Below, piece by piece: positions 52,164 through 62,744 of a DNA stretch of 64,000 nt. A program made the position numbers and the translations under genes. Under the pieces are notes generated by a model. The model did no database searches. It had not been told where the DNA came from and saw only the letters and a list, made by a program, of their open reading frames with translations. The stretch's first letter is position 1, and each line of letters begins with the position of its first letter. The stretch is taken from sequence record MZ443783.1. One strand, written 5' to 3'.

Positions 52164-52172
52164 TATTTACAG
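52164..52172 (-). promoter_or_regulatory. Class-1 promoter-like motif CTGTAAATA
   Basis: Exact copy heading the SbcC operon. Confidence 0.65.
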
Positions 52173-55399: not shown

Positions 55400-55760
55400 A
55401 AAAGAATAAAGTAAGACAAATCTTAAACTCCAATAGGGACTCGCTGGAATTCCTATTGGAGTTCACCCTCAACCGATGACGGTCGGCGGAAGGTGTTCTC
55501 CCCGTGCTTTTCGATTGCACCAGCACGGTAGCGCTTGCGGTCTTACGCTCTTGTCATGCAGCGGGCCGGCAGGGATGGTAGCATTTCCCGCCGCAAAGAG
55601 CAGCCGCTTTCGGCCATTAGCGATAACGCGGTGTTACGCTTAACGGCCCGACTCTGTGGCCGAGTCTGTACAAAAAAGAGTTCGGCCTATTCCCCAATTC
55701 GGCAAAAAGAAATAAGCCGAACTAAACAGTCAACGCACACTCCATATGCGCTGTTTTGTA
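55400..55760 (-). ncRNA. Candidate structured non-coding RNA (family unknown)
   Basis: Largest intergenic gap in the window, nearly filled by stem-loops, with class-2 motif CTAATTT at 55768-55774 pointing into it. Strand inferred from that motif only. Confidence 0.45.
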
Positions 55761-55767
55761 CTGTAAC

Positions 55768-55774
55768 AAATTAG
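55768..55774 (-). promoter_or_regulatory. Class-2 promoter-like motif CTAATTT with no CDS directly downstream
   Basis: Intergenic; the next credible start codon is more than 430 nt away. Confidence 0.45.
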
Positions 55775-55801: not shown

Positions 55802-56389
55802 TTAGTTCAACATCGGAACAAGATTTTGCAAGAAATGTTTGCGATCAAACGAACTGATTCGGTGCGGATGATCGACGTGCATGTTCCATCCTTTGTTGAA
55901 CAGCAGCACGTTCTTCGGCAGGACAATGTTAAGGCCAACGCGAGTGAACGAATCACGAACGGCAGTCACTGGATTGTCGTCAACCAGAATCCAAGTACCT
56001 TCACCGTACTTCTCGTTCAGGTAAGCAATCTTATCAGGATGCTGGCGTGAGTCCAGACAGTCGATGTGGTCAAACAACGACAGGTGCTTCTCCAACACCT
56101 TGCGTGTGTAGCGTTCACCTTTGGCGTGATAACCACGATGCGTACAAATGCCGACACTGAAACCGTCGCGCACCAGCATTGCAACCGTTTGGATGAAGTA
56201 GTCACGCATGTTAGCTTCGAGCATGAAGCGACCGTCAGCCAGCATCTCCACGAAAGGTTCGTGACCATTCTCTGGCGTAATGTACGTGTCGGTACCTGGG
56301 TAGATTCCCCAGTTCATCAGATAGCACAGCATGAAGTTATGCGTATCGAATGCCGTGTCGTCCATGTCGAAGAAAATATATTTAATCAT
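55802..56389 (-). CDS. HAD-superfamily phosphatase, 5'(3')-deoxyribonucleotidase-like (195 aa)
   Basis: YIFFDMDDT (DxD motif I), ICTHRG, K (motif III), ILVDDNP (motif IV). Confidence 0.8.
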   Translation of the reverse strand: MIKYIFFDMDDTAFDTHNFMLCYLMNWGIYPGTDTYITPENGHEPFVEMLADGRFMLEANMRDYFIQTVAMLVRDGFSVGICTHRGYHAKGERYTRKVLEKHLSLFDHIDCLDSRQHPDKIAYLNEKYGEGTWILVDDNPVTAVRDSFTRVGLNIVLPKNVLLFNKGWNMHVDHPHRISSFDRKHFLQNLVPMLN

Positions 56390-56729: not shown

Positions 56730-57305
56730 TTACGCCCTCAGATCAACAAGTATCGACGCACTCAAATCTCGAAGCATGTCACGGCCGAGAGAGGTGTACA
56801 TCGTTTGAGAAACAACTATGCGTTCAAGGAACAGGCGGGAACCAATGACGTCCCTGCCTAACTTCTGCTGAACGAACTCAATGATTGAAGACGGAGGCTG
56901 AATGAGGAACGTGAGTATCTCGGCATCGTGGAGAACGTTACCCATCGCTGTCACAGGTCGCATTTCTGTTTCCTGATCGAGGATGTATGAGATGACTCGG
57001 TCTGCATTGCCTATGTTTGGATAGCGCTTGAAGAATCTACGCACCGCTTCTACGGTGTGCATGAAATCGTATTCCGGTCGGGTCGGCATACGAAGAAAGA
57101 GTGAAGCGAGCAACAGGTTTATTTCTAACTGCGGACCTTGTTCAATGTTCAACATCGCATGTGCGGTCAACACAACATTCAACGAGAAGTCACGAGTATA
57201 GAGCGGGTGAGAGGTCGCTGTCTGATCGAAATAGTCAAGGGCCTGACGCAACCCTTGACGTATTAACAGGTGCTCTGCTTTAATGCGGGACAGGCGTTGC
57301 ATCAC
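56730..57305 (-). CDS. Hypothetical protein, possibly a degenerate HD-domain fold (191 aa)
   Basis: FSLNVVLTA...LLLASLF...VLHDAEIL resembles the HD pattern but lacks the central HD. Confidence 0.4.
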   Translation of the reverse strand: MMQRLSRIKAEHLLIRQGLRQALDYFDQTATSHPLYTRDFSLNVVLTAHAMLNIEQGPQLEINLLLASLFLRMPTRPEYDFMHTVEAVRRFFKRYPNIGNADRVISYILDQETEMRPVTAMGNVLHDAEILTFLIQPPSSIIEFVQQKLGRDVIGSRLFLERIVVSQTMYTSLGRDMLRDLSASILVDLRA

Positions 57306-58276
57306 TCAGCGCCGCGAATCTCTTTCAGGCTATTCTTGATCGCTTTGCGCAGCGTCTTGCCTACGTCAATGCCATCAATGTGACGAGCAAACACGTTGGC
57401 GAATAGCGTGGTTGGATTCTTCATGATCGCTTTGTCGAGGTCAGGACGACCTTCTGCAATCTGCAACTCCCCTGGCCAAAGTTCTGCAACCGCCGCGCTA
57501 TCGTTAGCCGCAATCAGTTCCAGTTCACGGACCGAGATAGAGTTCTGACGTGCAATCGTACGGAAGATTATGTCAACGAAAGGCAGCATGTCTTCGCTAA
57601 CAACGTTCTTCACGTCTTTGGCATCACCAGCACGTTGGAAATCTTCCAACAGACCTTCGAGATGCGTCTGTGTGATCTTCTGGACGTTACGCAGTTTCTT
57701 GAACAGCATCATCCAGCGAACTTTACGCTTAGAACTTAGCAGGTGAGTCCACACTGATTCACCGAGTGCGATCATCAGGCGGTTGTACACGTCAACGCTC
57801 AGGCTATCACGATCAACGAAGACCGTGATCTCATCATGCCATTCATCTTTACGGAATTTGCTGCGGAACGCATGAGTCTTCGACCCGGACTGCTGGACGA
57901 AGTTGATTTGTTTGCAGCGGCGTACAGCTTCCGCCAGATGATATTTCTCAATCACCTTAGGAAGTTTCTTAACGCCGACACGACACGCTTTTGCAACTTC
58001 GGCCTCACGACCGAAAAGAGATAAACGAGGCAGTCCGCCATAAACAGGCATCGAAGCGTATGGTCTGACTGTCACGCCACACACTGACATACCTGGCTCA
58101 GGGTCTGGTCCGAGAACACACAACACATCACCAGACTTCGGACTGAACTTGATCGTCTCAGGGTCTGGCGTACTCAGCGTGTTGGCCAAAAGACCAACAG
58201 TGTTGCCGGTAGCCAGCACCAAATGGTTTTTGTTACCCTGCCTTACAACAAGGTAATCTTTTTCACTATGTTTCAT
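57302..58276 (-). CDS. Hypothetical protein (324 aa)
   Basis: Long ORF with AAAGG SD; weak zincin-like features without HExxH. Confidence 0.55.
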   Translation of the reverse strand: MKHSEKDYLVVRQGNKNHLVLATGNTVGLLANTLSTPDPETIKFSPKSGDVLCVLGPDPEPGMSVCGVTVRPYASMPVYGGLPRLSLFGREAEVAKACRVGVKKLPKVIEKYHLAEAVRRCKQINFVQQSGSKTHAFRSKFRKDEWHDEITVFVDRDSLSVDVYNRLMIALGESVWTHLLSSKRKVRWMMLFKKLRNVQKITQTHLEGLLEDFQRAGDAKDVKNVVSEDMLPFVDIIFRTIARQNSISVRELELIAANDSAAVAELWPGELQIAEGRPDLDKAIMKNPTTLFANVFARHIDGIDVGKTLRKAIKNSLKEIRGAE

Positions 58277-58284
58277 AACGACCT

Positions 58285-58815
58285 TTATAGTTGATCAACG
58301 ATGTTCATCGTGTGAACTTCCGCTGTGTAGCCCTGACGGAAGATGCGACCTTCTGCGCGGCCAGATGCCTGCTCTGCGGAAGGGACGCCCCAGCTTGTTG
58401 CAGGCTCAACCGAGATGAGTGCCTGCTCATCCCACATGTCACCGTCTTCAAGGTAGTCGGCAATCATCTGGAGAGCAGCAGGACGATCGAGGCCCAAGTG
58501 CGCAAGCTCGGCGATAATAAGTTTCGGCGCAGTGGCGTCTTTCATTTCGTCGAGTTCGTATTGCAAATCGGAAAGCGAGTTAACCTGATGGCAGTCAGCG
58601 CTAGTCAGGCCTGCATACTCGTCTTGTCCGAAATAAGCAATTGCAAAGTCAGAAACATCAAGTTGACTGGAAAAGAAATGAGGAGCGTCCACCAGAACAG
58701 AAGGCGCGGCGCTCATCTGGAGAAAACTCATGTATGGGCGTTGCATATCGTGAGCTTCTACCGAACAGGACTTCCCAGCAAGATCTTTCATTATGCTGTG
58801 TGCGAGATTATTCAT
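58285..58815 (-). CDS. Hypothetical protein (176 aa)
   Basis: GAGGT SD. Confidence 0.55.
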   Translation of the reverse strand: MNNLAHSIMKDLAGKSCSVEAHDMQRPYMSFLQMSAAPSVLVDAPHFFSSQLDVSDFAIAYFGQDEYAGLTSADCHQVNSLSDLQYELDEMKDATAPKLIIAELAHLGLDRPAALQMIADYLEDGDMWDEQALISVEPATSWGVPSAEQASGRAEGRIFRQGYTAEVHTMNIVDQL

Positions 58816-58822
58816 TGTAACC

Positions 58823-59038
58823 TCATTTCTCAGGAGTAGGAGTAAAAGGGCTGTGGGTGTACGGGGTTAACTTATCCACATACAGGAAACGAGATGAAGC
58901 ACTACTGTAACCAGAGCGTGGTGCCGATTGCTTTTTCTTGGCTTCGGCCTCACGTCTATCCAGCTCGTCAAAGATACCTACGCGACGGGCGTACTTAAAC
59001 TTCGGATGTACGGAGATATGTTTGACGATAGCTGTCAT
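58823..59038 (-). CDS. Hypothetical protein (71 aa)
   Basis: ATGA overlap with the upstream gene. Confidence 0.5.
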   Translation of the reverse strand: MTAIVKHISVHPKFKYARRVGIFDELDRREAEAKKKQSAPRSGYSSASSRFLYVDKLTPYTHSPFTPTPEK

Positions 59039-60066
59039 TTTTTATATTGTCCTGTAACAATGTAGACAAGGGATTTTTTGGAGACACGCGCATTGACGAT
59101 CAAGTATTTGAACTCTTTCGTCGGCTCAAGTTCTCCAGCCGTCACACGAACTATTGGAATGTTCTGAATCTCACCGAACGTAAGTGTCGTCCCCATCTCA
59201 TTGATTGAGCAGGAAGATGAAAGCGAAACACTATTCAACGACTTCTTTGAAATCATCGAAGGATGTTTACCGTGCTGGCGTTTGGCATCCAACCATTTTT
59301 GCCAGTCGGCTGTCGCGTGGTGCATTGAACGTTTAATCAAAGAGCGTGGAACATCGCCTTCATACTGCTTGCGAAACTCCGTAATGACTTTCGAGTCAGG
59401 AGCACCTGCGGTTACGCGTCGTTTGTCCTTAAGCGCCCCCTTCAAATGCTCTGACCAATGGTCGTAGGCAGCGCCACGGATCTGGATGTAATCATCCATC
59501 ATCTGAGCTTGCGCCAAACTACATTCAATTTCGAATGTCACCAACTTACCGCGATAGCTTGGCGTATCAGCCGAGTGCCGTTCAGCGAGTTTTGCCGCGC
59601 GTGTTTCAGCGATAAGTTTCTCTTTGATACAAGCTGCCCATGAGTACACAAACGTCAATCGCAGATCAGGACCTTGCGCCAGCAAGTCAGGACAGAACTG
59701 CATTAACAGTGGGATAGCATAACCGAGATAGCAACGACGTTCGATGAACGCGGACTTTAGGTCATCAGGATTGATTTTACCTTCACCGAGATTCGCAAAC
59801 AGTTTTCGAGACTGCTTATACGACTCGGAGATATGGGAGCCATCATACACAACATCATCAATGGTAATTCCCGACTCAATGACTTTGGTGTACGCTTCTT
59901 CGATTGTAACATCAGGCCACGTCCTGTACCCAACATCGGCCAGCAGAAAATTCTTATGGCAGAAGAACTCATACATGTGCAAAAAGTCCGCGACAGGCAG
60001 ACTTTCTGGATATACGAATTGTTTGGGCGCTTTCTTTGGCGTGATACTAGCTTTCTTCTTAATCAT
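59035..60066 (-). CDS. Fusion of an unknown N-domain and a TnpB/IS605-OrfB-like WED/REC module, lacking RuvC (343 aa)
   Basis: C-terminal ~170 aa aligns by eye to the TnpB N-terminal half (see findings); ends where the RuvC-I GIDLG motif would begin. Confidence 0.5.
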   Translation of the reverse strand: MIKKKASITPKKAPKQFVYPESLPVADFLHMYEFFCHKNFLLADVGYRTWPDVTIEEAYTKVIESGITIDDVVYDGSHISESYKQSRKLFANLGEGKINPDDLKSAFIERRCYLGYAIPLLMQFCPDLLAQGPDLRLTFVYSWAACIKEKLIAETRAAKLAERHSADTPSYRGKLVTFEIECSLAQAQMMDDYIQIRGAAYDHWSEHLKGALKDKRRVTAGAPDSKVITEFRKQYEGDVPRSLIKRSMHHATADWQKWLDAKRQHGKHPSMISKKSLNSVSLSSSCSINEMGTTLTFGEIQNIPIVRVTAGELEPTKEFKYLIVNARVSKKSLVYIVTGQYKK

Positions 60067-60073
60067 CGCTTTC

Positions 60074-61825
60074 TCACTGGAGTTTGCTGGCTATTTTCAG
60101 ATACTCGCTATTTACAGTTTCCACATCCGTGTAGCCCCTGCTGGCTGTAACGTCACGGCGTAGATCACCCATGCGGTAACCGTTTTCCCATAGACGCATA
60201 AACAACAGGCTGTTAAGAGTCGGCTGCATGAACGGTTTTTCTTTCAATGCAACATCACCCTTATATTCGGTCAAGAGTATCGCGCCATCAAATTCGGCAC
60301 TGCACCATTCGGCTTCCGCTAAAATTTTAAGCAGGTTATGATTCTCCATGCCTTGGATTAAATGACTAAGCACCGTGTACTGTTCCCGCTTGAAGCGATG
60401 CGCAGGTACTTGGTGTGAGCATCCTGAATCGTTTTTGAAATAGTACGCACCGTTACGAGAATAAGAGGAATCTCGTATGCGCTCGCACAATTCACTGACG
60501 ACTTCGGACGCAGGCTTAAACATCGCCTTCCACTTATCCCAAATAAATCCAACATGCTGGTGCATCTCTTTTTCATTCAGTCGAAGTTTCTTAACCGCAT
60601 TGACGATCTTCGTGTCATTCAACAACTGACGATAAATATCAGTAGCCATAGGCTTTTGTTGTTCGTTGTCCGTGCGTGTCTCGAATGATTGCTTGAAATA
60701 TTTCTGGTTACTCCAGCCGCTATAAATTCCCCCGTAGTTGAGAGTCTTGGCTGTACTGCGCGTAATGTTCAACTGCCGTGCAACCCTATCGTGATTGAGT
60801 TGCTCAAGTTCAGGACAATCTAGTCCATACTGTGCCATCAGGTCTAAAAGCAAAACCATCTGAGCATTAGGCATGTCGAAGTTACGGCCATACGAATGAT
60901 CGAAACATAACAGCTTCACCAATTTAGGTAGAGCGGCCGTAGTTCCAAACAATCGTGACCCAACGTGGTTCATTGTGTATTCGTCGTAAAACTCCACCAG
61001 CCTGTCGTTTGGATTATCGTTAACAAGCCTAAACCCGAAGCGACAAATCTTTTTCAGGAACGAATTGAGTCTGAGGTGCAGTTTCTTTCGGCGATTCGTT
61101 TTTGTATTGTGCATTATGTCCAAGAATCGATCGAGGTACAACCGATACGGACGTTGATTGGCCTGAGCCTTGTTTATCAGTTCGATAACCTCACCGCAAT
61201 ATGCTCTGCGATTTTCGAAGTTATGGGGACGAATAAACGAGCGTGGCTTTATTTCGGAGCAGAACGAAGACGTTACCAAGTCGGCTTCGTTTTTATAGAG
61301 GGCCCTTCTACGCACAGGCTTCATGAGATTGTACAGAGGCTCATCAAGCAAGGTCAGTTCGCAGAATATGTCCGTAAACACCTTATTAAGCGTGTACTTA
61401 CGGGCGATCCCCTTAATGTAATCGTAACGAGTGTGGTCAACCTTTCGACCTAACCACGTAGCTACGGAGTATTCCTTGTGATACACCATCGCGTACCGCA
61501 TCTTTTCGTGCTGACGCAGGTAGGTGTGGGTCACTACCGTTTCGTTATAGACGTTTCTGCGTTCCATAACGCCTGATTTATCGAGAAGGTGCATGAAAAA
61601 CCATGCAAGACTCTCGTAAAACTTATCCGATTTTGCTTTAGGTGGCTTAGGGCAAGAATAAATCGTGTCCCAGAAGAACTTGTGGGCCGATTTATTAACC
61701 GTGAACGCCCATCCTGGCATCACGGCCTTCTTGCGGTACACGGGCTTTGCCATTTGGACCTCAAAACATGCGTTTCGTGGGTGATCTTTACAGAATCCGT
61801 CTTTTTCTCGTGGTATGGAACTCAA
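60074..61825 (-). CDS. Divergent PolA-superfamily (TV-Pol-like) polymerase (583 aa from TTG; ATG 61753 with GAGGT SD gives 559 aa)
   Basis: GSRLF, motif A RNFDMPNAQMVLL, motif B RSTAKTLNYGGIY, HLIQGMEN, motif C AEFDGAIL, in the correct order. Confidence 0.6.
   Translation of the reverse strand: MSSIPREKDGFCKDHPRNACFEVQMAKPVYRKKAVMPGWAFTVNKSAHKFFWDTIYSCPKPPKAKSDKFYESLAWFFMHLLDKSGVMERRNVYNETVVTHTYLRQHEKMRYAMVYHKEYSVATWLGRKVDHTRYDYIKGIARKYTLNKVFTDIFCELTLLDEPLYNLMKPVRRRALYKNEADLVTSSFCSEIKPRSFIRPHNFENRRAYCGEVIELINKAQANQRPYRLYLDRFLDIMHNTKTNRRKKLHLRLNSFLKKICRFGFRLVNDNPNDRLVEFYDEYTMNHVGSRLFGTTAALPKLVKLLCFDHSYGRNFDMPNAQMVLLLDLMAQYGLDCPELEQLNHDRVARQLNITRSTAKTLNYGGIYSGWSNQKYFKQSFETRTDNEQQKPMATDIYRQLLNDTKIVNAVKKLRLNEKEMHQHVGFIWDKWKAMFKPASEVVSELCERIRDSSYSRNGAYYFKNDSGCSHQVPAHRFKREQYTVLSHLIQGMENHNLLKILAEAEWCSAEFDGAILLTEYKGDVALKEKPFMQPTLNSLLFMRLWENGYRMGDLRRDVTASRGYTDVETVNSEYLKIASKLQ
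60109..60117 (-). promoter_or_regulatory. Class-1 promoter-like motif CTGTAAATA
   Basis: Exact copy, 42 nt upstream of 60066, inside the 3' end of the TV-Pol-like gene. Confidence 0.6.
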
Positions 61826-62084
61826 ATTGCATCATCAGATTAGGTAGATAGGAGATATCAGCATGTTCATGCAGCATGAGCGCACTATAGTCACAAGAAA
61901 GCAGCAGTCTGAAACCAGAACCCTGCTCCCAGGAAGCATATCCCTTTGAAATAACCATGCCGAAACAGGCGAAAACGTACAACCTTGAATAGACTGGTTA
62001 TTTGGTGTCAATGCAGAGGATTCTTAATCCCAGCATGTGGACGTGCAAAGGGAGTGCTCCCGGGATGAATCTACAGGAAAGTGG

Positions 62085-62744
62085 TTATTTTTTGCGCGAA
62101 ACGCGCTTACCCAGTTTTACACCGATTTGCGTCATAATGCGCTTCACGGTCTCTCCGTCATGGTCCTCAATGGCGTTTGCGAGTTTTTCGCCCTGCTCGC
62201 GTGAAAGCTCAGGCATAATCAGTTTTAGCATCTGCGAACGCATTTTCGCAGACTTTGATTTGCCGCGTGATAGAGATTGTGTGTCCATTTCGTTTGCAAC
62301 ACGGCTCATGGTGCGCTGCACACGACGATCTGCGAAGATATCAGCAAAAATATTGCCAAACAGGTCCTGGAACGAACGTCCACCGCCCATAATGTCGTCT
62401 TTTGTGAAACGAACAGGCTGTCCGAGCGCATTCTGCTTATTGCAGTGCGTGGATTCCACTTCGTTTTGAGTACGTCCACCAGCACGGAAGTTCTCGTCAG
62501 GGCGTGACGCTTTACCCTCTGCACCTGGTTTAGTGTTGCCGTTGCGCAGATCTGCATCGCCTTCAACAGCCTTATCGGGGTCGAACATGTCGTCCGCTGT
62601 CTCGCTTTGGTTAGCGTCAAACGGAATCTTGCCCGTCAGCTTATTCGGGTCAGGCCAGCTCTTTGGAATATCAGAAGCAGGTTGCGCTTTGTTCGTCATA
62701 TCGCCGTTAGCTTCGCTATTCAGGCTGATCATAATACGTGCCAT
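62085..62744 (-). CDS. Hypothetical protein with MARIMISLNS leader-like N-terminus (219 aa)
   Basis: AGGAG SD; low-complexity middle region, helical C-terminus. Confidence 0.55.
   Translation of the reverse strand: MARIMISLNSEANGDMTNKAQPASDIPKSWPDPNKLTGKIPFDANQSETADDMFDPDKAVEGDADLRNGNTKPGAEGKASRPDENFRAGGRTQNEVESTHCNKQNALGQPVRFTKDDIMGGGRSFQDLFGNIFADIFADRRVQRTMSRVANEMDTQSLSRGKSKSAKMRSQMLKLIMPELSREQGEKLANAIEDHDGETVKRIMTQIGVKLGKRVSRKK

Follow-up and report, generated by a model that had tools for sequence, protein, structure and literature searches.

The gene pEaSNUABM28_00223 of Erwinia phage pEa_SNUABM_28 (Alexandravirus, 267-kb genome; MZ443783.1), located at 59035..60066 on the minus strand of the 64,000-nucleotide stretch analysed here (hereafter the window), encodes a 343-amino-acid (aa) protein annotated as hypothetical. 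Our analysis revealed two domains in this protein, of which the C-terminal one (residues ~168–343; 59038..59565, minus strand) is very probably homologous to the WED-REC-WED half of TnpB. The protein is non-catalytic and places a TnpB-derived domain in a new architecture, with an added helical domain at the N-terminus. The gene directly upstream is predicted to encode a minimal polymerase, and the two genes are inherited and exchanged between related phages as a unit. New here are the predicted polymerase identity of the upstream gene and the exchange of both genes in one cassette; no account of a WED-REC-only family, or of its link with a polymerase, was found in the literature searched.

The WED-REC domain and the missing nuclease half

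An AlphaFold2 model of the target protein, computed from a 13-sequence alignment assembled from IMG/VR loci, had a mean predicted local distance difference test score (pLDDT) of 84.6. Residues 25–162 were all-helical, and residues 175–341 comprised one strand, three helices and then six strands; this secondary structure, together with Foldseek and hhalign comparisons, defined the C-terminal domain as a WED-REC-WED module of the TnpB type. In the Foldseek search of the PDB, ranks 1–21 were occupied only by TnpB, Cas12f, Cas12k, Cas12n, Cas12m, Fanzor2, TranC and Cas12X. The best match was ISDra2 TnpB (8exa_A; E 3.2e-4, probability 1.00), ISFba1 TnpB reached E 9.8e-4, and the first unrelated protein appeared at E 1.6. 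The template modelling score (TM-score) normalised to the target was 0.69 against 8ex9_A, an ISDra2 structure in which only WED and REC are resolved. A search of the viral library BFVD returned the protein's own family, followed by TnpB/Fanzor 'transposases' from giant viruses and phages.

For the comparison at the sequence level, 11 TnpBs from phage genomes served as references, and their RuvC-free N-terminal half was aligned by hhalign with the C-terminal domain of 18 family members. The two profiles aligned end to end and in one register over 153 columns (P 2.5e-5, probability 75%), with a sequence identity to TnpB of 10–16%. This usable signal was obtained after both sides had been restricted to domains and six more members had been added; at whole length against full TnpB, the match was weak (probability 12.6%). 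The score of 38.3 compared with at most 18.0 for 58 column-shuffled alignments and 12.2 for a reversed alignment, and neither the N-terminal domain against TnpB (P 0.73) nor the C-terminal domain against the RuvC/zinc half of TnpB (P 0.5) gave a signal. When a TnpB hidden Markov model (HMM) was run over all six-frame pieces of the window, the target open reading frame (ORF) ranked first (E 0.014). An earlier note on this DNA, made from the letters alone, had described the ORF at 59035..60066 on the minus strand and quoted peptides from it, all of which are present in the translation (residue 173 corresponds to nt 59550), and had called its C-terminal ~170 aa TnpB-like in order and spacing; the 21 leading structural matches and the hhalign alignment bear this out.

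The comparison with TnpB/Cas12f families was positive by Foldseek and hhalign and negative by Pfam: none of 13 members matched anything, PF12323, PF01385 and PF07282 included, even with E allowed up to 10. It also counts against TnpB ancestry that PHROGs, NCBIfam and PDB sequences yielded no usable match for the protein or the 13-member profile; the best PDB profile match, Atg23 at E 0.05, was judged to be due to chance. With the standard HMM libraries silent, the homology rests on the fold and the HH-level signal. If the similarity were convergent, a beta-barrel with an inserted helical bundle would have arisen independently and without TnpB ancestry, and the low identity, the missing Pfam and PDB sequence-profile matches and the weak whole-protein alignment are all what such an origin would give. 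It would leave unexplained, however, why the elements follow the same order and register over the full alignment at scores that no shuffled profile approached, why all of the first 21 structural neighbours belong to the TnpB/Cas12 superfamily, and why the sequence-level motif matches of the earlier note share the hhalign register. We therefore consider convergence very improbable.

The RuvC motifs and the CxxC zinc ribbon, both invariant in the 11 reference TnpBs, are missing from the target. In none of the 18 family members, not even in P0017 (533 aa), the most divergent, does the chain run more than a few residues beyond the last WED strand. A search with a RuvC-half HMM in all frames at or near 58–60 kb found nothing significant, with only a chance-level piece (E 6) at 58308–58463, and the downstream ORFs were ruled out as split RuvC remnants, having no domain or RuvC-half HMM match. 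Pfam detected no tnpA or transposase domains in the neighbouring proteins. There is thus no RuvC, zinc ribbon, tnpA or IS (insertion sequence) end at the target and, since the RuvC and zinc-ribbon half is wholly absent, the protein cannot cut DNA. The syntenic position of the gene is fixed in five phage genera, and the genes just downstream of it vary between genera. The family-wide end after WED, the lack of any RuvC trace or tnpA and the fixed synteny show that the gene is neither an IS copy nor a recent pseudogene; it is a stable, domain-level TnpB derivative that is fixed in the phage genome and not mobile. It had been proposed earlier that RuvC was cut off and not point-inactivated, and that the gene does not lie within an IS, and both proposals held.

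The target gene was found by tblastn in 22 phage records of Alexandravirus, Sasquatchvirus, Rivsvirus, Yoloswagvirus and Salmondvirus, with hosts in Erwinia and Dickeya. Among 1.84 billion representatives, covered by word-indexed and exhaustive searches, the family formed 11 clusters at 90% identity and 7 at 50%, and an HMM search of the same representatives recovered the family itself only, with no bridge to TnpB. Across the five genera, at 27–32% identity, 24 residues are invariant, including E181, Q186, Y193, S225, T229, R232 and a P240-R241-S242 block, which hhalign sets on the 'EV.S..LQ' REC helix of TnpB. The conservation and synteny suggested for follow-up by the earlier note are evident, the gene being kept at one position in five jumbo-phage genera, and conservation of the sequences over this range points to selection on the family.

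The C-terminal domain of the target is basic (isoelectric point ~9.6, net charge +10), and its net charge is +8 to +12 in most members across the family, whereas the N-terminal domain is neutral. The N-terminal domain (residues 1–167; 59566..60066, minus strand), delimited by the AlphaFold2 model and the family alignment, starts with a Lys-rich disordered tail (residues 1–10, pLDDT < 50) and is all-helical thereafter. Its invariant positions are Y32, E33, T49-W50-P51, I118, L120 and W143, and P119 is nearly invariant. Foldseek, Pfam and PDB gave no significant match for this domain, in agreement with the previous description of a new N-domain joined to a TnpB-like part.

Comparison with known systems showed that the target shares with TnpB (IS200/IS605 OrfB; ISDra2, PDB 8exa/8ex9) and with Cas12f the WED-REC-WED topology, the order of elements, a weak but specific profile similarity and a basic character. 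In contrast to TnpB, it has no RuvC, zinc ribbon, omega-RNA locus, IS ends or tnpA, is not mobile and carries an extra 167-aa N-terminal domain, and its C-terminal domain (net +10) is less basic than true TnpB N-terminal halves (net +9 to +25). Like TldR and other inactivated derivatives, it is a TnpB offshoot without cleavage that has been recruited elsewhere and, like some TldRs, it is encoded by a phage. Cas12k, Cas12m, sigma-E-associated dCas12f, Ri-7/Ri-8 and TldR keep the RuvC scaffold with an active site that is mutated or partly trimmed, and use a guide RNA (PMC10691335, PMC12259090). In the literature searched, RuvC is retained by every TnpB exaptation, Cas12 effectors among them. The target differs from TldR, whose scaffold is retained and inactivated, in lacking the entire RuvC half, and no adjacent guide locus was found. 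Since the tests for RuvC, zinc ribbon, IS context and omega-RNA all came out negative, the protein should be classed as neither TnpB nor TldR.

The adjacent polymerase-like gene, the cassette and the promoter motif

The target gene lies in a long minus-strand gene array, between the 559-aa gene 00224 and a 71-aa ORF. Gene 00224 (60074..61753, minus strand) stops 7 nt before the target ATG and encodes 559 aa from the annotated ATG, or 583 aa from a TTG at 61825. It matches phrog_30690 (function unknown); most relatives label it 'hypothetical', whereas the label in pEa_SNUABM_5 is 'putative helicase'. A model of the 559-aa protein (pLDDT 73) matched, by Foldseek, the T7 RNA polymerase (RNAP) elongation complex best (8dh0_B, E 1.8e-4), together with mitochondrial RNAPs, KlenTaq and Pol I, at E up to 1e-2, and its profile matched motif B of Pol gamma in the PDB at E 0.012–0.04. 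Three residues are invariant in its alignment, namely the Asp of motif A (D293), the Lys of motif B (K336) and the Asp of motif C (D489). K336 lies within an RxxxK motif in which the Arg is replaced by Lys in Salmondvirus; the alignment reads a Gln at the position of the steric-gate Glu of Pol I, and a Tyr or Phe at the aromatic position of motif B. From this modelled fold and these motifs, the upstream gene, which carries no such annotation, is predicted to encode a minimal member of the Pol I/T7-RNAP polymerase superfamily, resembling both family-A enzymes and T7 RNAP.

Enzymes of the TV-Pol type, which are family-A-like, have been predicted to prime and extend (PMC2579912). Compared by description only, the 00224 family resembles them in its size of 400–600 aa, a thumb-palm-fingers core, two catalytic Asp residues, the RxxxK motif and its viral origin (PMC2579912). 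It is unlike TV-Pol, which has D5-like helicase partners, in being paired with the WED-REC protein or with a small acidic protein. Gene 00224 may be a member of the TV-Pol family or a close neighbour of it.

A polymerase homolog lies directly upstream of the target in every phage genome read and on the metagenome contig L015; the homolog of the distant contig L013 is found two genes from the target (hhalign probability 99.9%). Comparison by blastn with sister phages showed that the two genes, together with an upstream 260-nt spacer (61826–62084), form a cassette at 59039..62088 (minus strand). Against pEa_SNUABM_22, of the same genus, identity was 97.7% up to 59038 and 96.3% from 62089, with none between, and the breakpoints were identical against SNUABM_30, SNUABM_20 and AD1. 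When the swapped block was set against NC_061440.1 181755–184277, it appeared as a sharp allelic replacement, with 96–98% identity between the phages on either flank. The other cassette type contains a diverged polymerase (~18–23% identity, hhalign probability 100%) and, in the slot of the target, a helical protein of 155–174 aa with an acidic tail. These small proteins are not detectably related to either target domain or to TnpB (hhalign P 0.2–0.8); a faint 'LG.A.P.L' resemblance to the N-terminal domain was not significant. Polymerase and downstream partner thus behave as a single unit in inheritance and exchange, which is the main argument for a functional pair.

The 71-aa ORF on the 3' side of the target (58823..59038, minus strand), known from the ORF list, lies outside the cassette and has no Pfam or PHROG match. 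Its start overlaps the target stop in an ATGA at 59035–59038, and the coupling of the gene to its neighbour that had been noted before is this stop/start overlap.

A promoter-type motif, CTGTAAATA, is present as an exact copy at 60109..60117 (minus strand), 42 nt upstream of the target ATG and within the 3' end of the polymerase-like gene. The window contains 10 exact copies, all on the minus strand, versus 0.36 expected (12809, 18656, 22084, 23514, 31455, 38813, 41318, 52172, 55041 and 60117). Several of the other copies are intergenic and follow directly on terminator-like hairpins, and several lie upstream of genes called DNA polymerase, sliding clamp or clamp loader in relatives. The motif stood 27–43 nt upstream of the target homolog in 10 of the 11 family contexts read, within the polymerase gene or at its end; these 10 include Salmondvirus (27% protein identity) and one metagenome contig, and only L013, the most distant contig, has no copy there. 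Where the other cassette type is present, the motif is absent upstream of the partner gene. A scan for sigma-70 promoters and terminators near the gene remained at background level. The exact class-1 motif reported earlier upstream of the gene is this conserved copy of CTGTAAATA. Its conserved position indicates that the target very probably has a promoter of its own, of a class that also precedes replication genes.

Some further features of the motif were recorded. It resembles the T4 late-promoter box TATAAATA, it usually follows an A/T run and often also a GC-rich terminator hairpin of the repeat family GGGCAGCCGAAGCCACCC, which has five copies, and the sites at 52172 and 60117 have an identical 21-nt extension in common. 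A k-mer search for a second promoter class gave only GATATC words, mostly in-frame Asp-Ile codon pairs, and no signal. GATATC, the EcoRV site, occurs 64 times in the window versus ~16 expected, mostly as GAT-ATC in frame; phage genomes do not usually hold a palindromic hexamer in such excess.

Possible roles of the pair

In TnpB and Cas12f, the WED-REC half reads the duplex of the transposon-associated motif (TAM) and clamps the RNA-DNA heteroduplex. We tentatively favour, at somewhat less than even confidence, a reading in which the target, devoid of a nuclease, binds nucleic acid and serves the neighbouring polymerase as a subunit for targeting, loading or holding the hybrid. The ~175 residues of the C-terminal domain very probably derive from an RNA-guided nuclease like TnpB, of which they represent the N-terminal half, a WED beta-barrel interrupted by a REC bundle. 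The ligand of this basic module would be a specific DNA duplex or else a primer/transcript-template hybrid. The N-terminal domain would dock on the polymerase, and the target would aid the polymerase in phage DNA replication or in a specialised transcription or priming step. The pairing of a small polymerase with a separate nucleic-acid-binding protein recalls TFB2M/Mtf1 with POLRMT, and gp2 of phage N4 with RNAP II, as a functional analogy only; the target has no sequence or fold relation to these proteins, and the analogy comes from gene context alone. A more specific proposal, about which we are doubtful, is that the WED-REC domain is a site-selecting subunit, a reader or melter of duplex that possibly uses a short RNA and steers the polymerase to phage sequences, where it starts transcription or primes replication. 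If that were true, the cassette of the sister phages would supply its diverged polymerase with another specificity subunit, one not homologous to the target.

Several points weigh against a subunit of the polymerase. Polymerase homologs were found in 41 phage records and the target in only 22 and, with an unrelated small protein in its place elsewhere, the WED-REC partner is not strictly needed. The adjacency and the cassette swap would also fit a pair that is merely co-inherited, and a promoter of its own lets the target be expressed independently of the polymerase. In addition, the P240-R241-S242 block is only putatively tied to TAM recognition, through a helix that carries TAM-contacting residues in the ISDra2 structures. 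One alternative is that the protein is a stand-alone, sequence-specific DNA- or RNA-binding regulator, which would recognise a fixed motif like a guide-free TAM reader and control transcription or replication, of the phage or of its host, without involving the polymerase. A basic and conserved domain, a conserved promoter of its own and the existence of polymerase homologs without the target would all be expected of such a regulator. It would leave unexplained, however, why the target is exchanged only jointly with the polymerase, the breakpoints coinciding exactly with the two-gene block, and why a polymerase homolog stands beside or near the target in every context; we regard it as unlikely.

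A second alternative is an RNA-guided, nuclease-free repressor or targeting factor like TldR or Cas12k, with a guide RNA encoded by the phage. TldR encoded by phages provides a precedent (10.1101/2023.11.30.569447), the C-terminal domain is of TnpB ancestry, and a conserved RNA with strong structure is found 3.3 kb downstream of the target, in the same transcriptional direction. This non-coding RNA candidate of ~370 nt (55400–55770, minus strand; core 55425–55636) has an RNAfold z of -7.2. Compensatory changes affect 14 of its 31 consensus pairs when five genera are compared, the TAAGAC and GGGGAG boxes do not vary, and there is a terminal hairpin, AACUCCAAU...AUUGGAGUU. The candidate is flanked by the last gene of the operon on one side and by a 65-aa ORF and a clamp-loader gene on the other. 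No Rfam family matches it. A covariance model recovered it at full score in pEa_SNUABM_22 and AD1, both of which are without the target protein, and did not find it on contig L013; the RNA is therefore not specifically tied to the target, and the case for the RNA at 55.4–55.8 kb, put forward as a ligand in the earlier note, as a dedicated partner is weakened. Nor does any non-coding space adjoin the target gene, whose stop overlaps the next ORF, and the genes further downstream vary between genera. In the ISDra2 structures of TnpB, it is mainly RuvC and WED jointly that hold the omega-RNA scaffold, and RuvC is gone from the target. A TldR-like, RNA-guided role thus appears distinctly improbable and is less likely than a role as polymerase subunit. 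The protein could also be an anti-defence decoy or inhibitor, a dead fragment that takes up guide RNAs or TAM or protospacer-adjacent-motif sites of host TnpB/Cas12-type systems or otherwise hinders immunity. A cassette that is hypervariable between near-identical phages is a pattern common for conflict genes, and the family is narrowly distributed; the tight coupling to the polymerase, and a promoter motif common to replication genes, suggest nucleic-acid synthesis instead, so that we rate such a decoy as very unlikely.

A conserved family that retains only the WED-REC half of TnpB would show this half to be an autonomous, evolvable module for nucleic-acid recognition, and would add lytic jumbo phages to the places where TnpB has been domesticated. 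That the family is constantly paired with a minimal polymerase lacking annotation suggests an undescribed device for replication priming or transcription. The phages concerned (Alexandravirus, Sasquatchvirus, Rivsvirus, Yoloswagvirus and Salmondvirus) belong to a group under development against fire blight and soft rot, and the cassette polymorphism among 97%-identical phages makes the pairing directly testable. A stand-alone WED-REC domain of ~175 aa may also interest engineers of compact DNA-binding tools.

Other genes of the operon and a phage TnpB

The same operon includes, at 55802–56389 (minus strand), a HAD (haloacid dehalogenase)/polynucleotide-kinase-phosphatase-like protein (phrog_415/16292) and, at 57302–58276 (minus strand), a well-conserved 324-aa protein called 'peptidase' in PHROGs (phrog_17197). 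The latter is 42% identical even on contig L013, and is better conserved than the polymerase or the target. Salmonella phage LPSTLL (MN737551.1; L017 1186–2277) encodes a full-length TnpB that is labelled 'putative head morphogenesis protein', and this protein is 49% identical to the TnpB of Acinetobacter phage HFM1.

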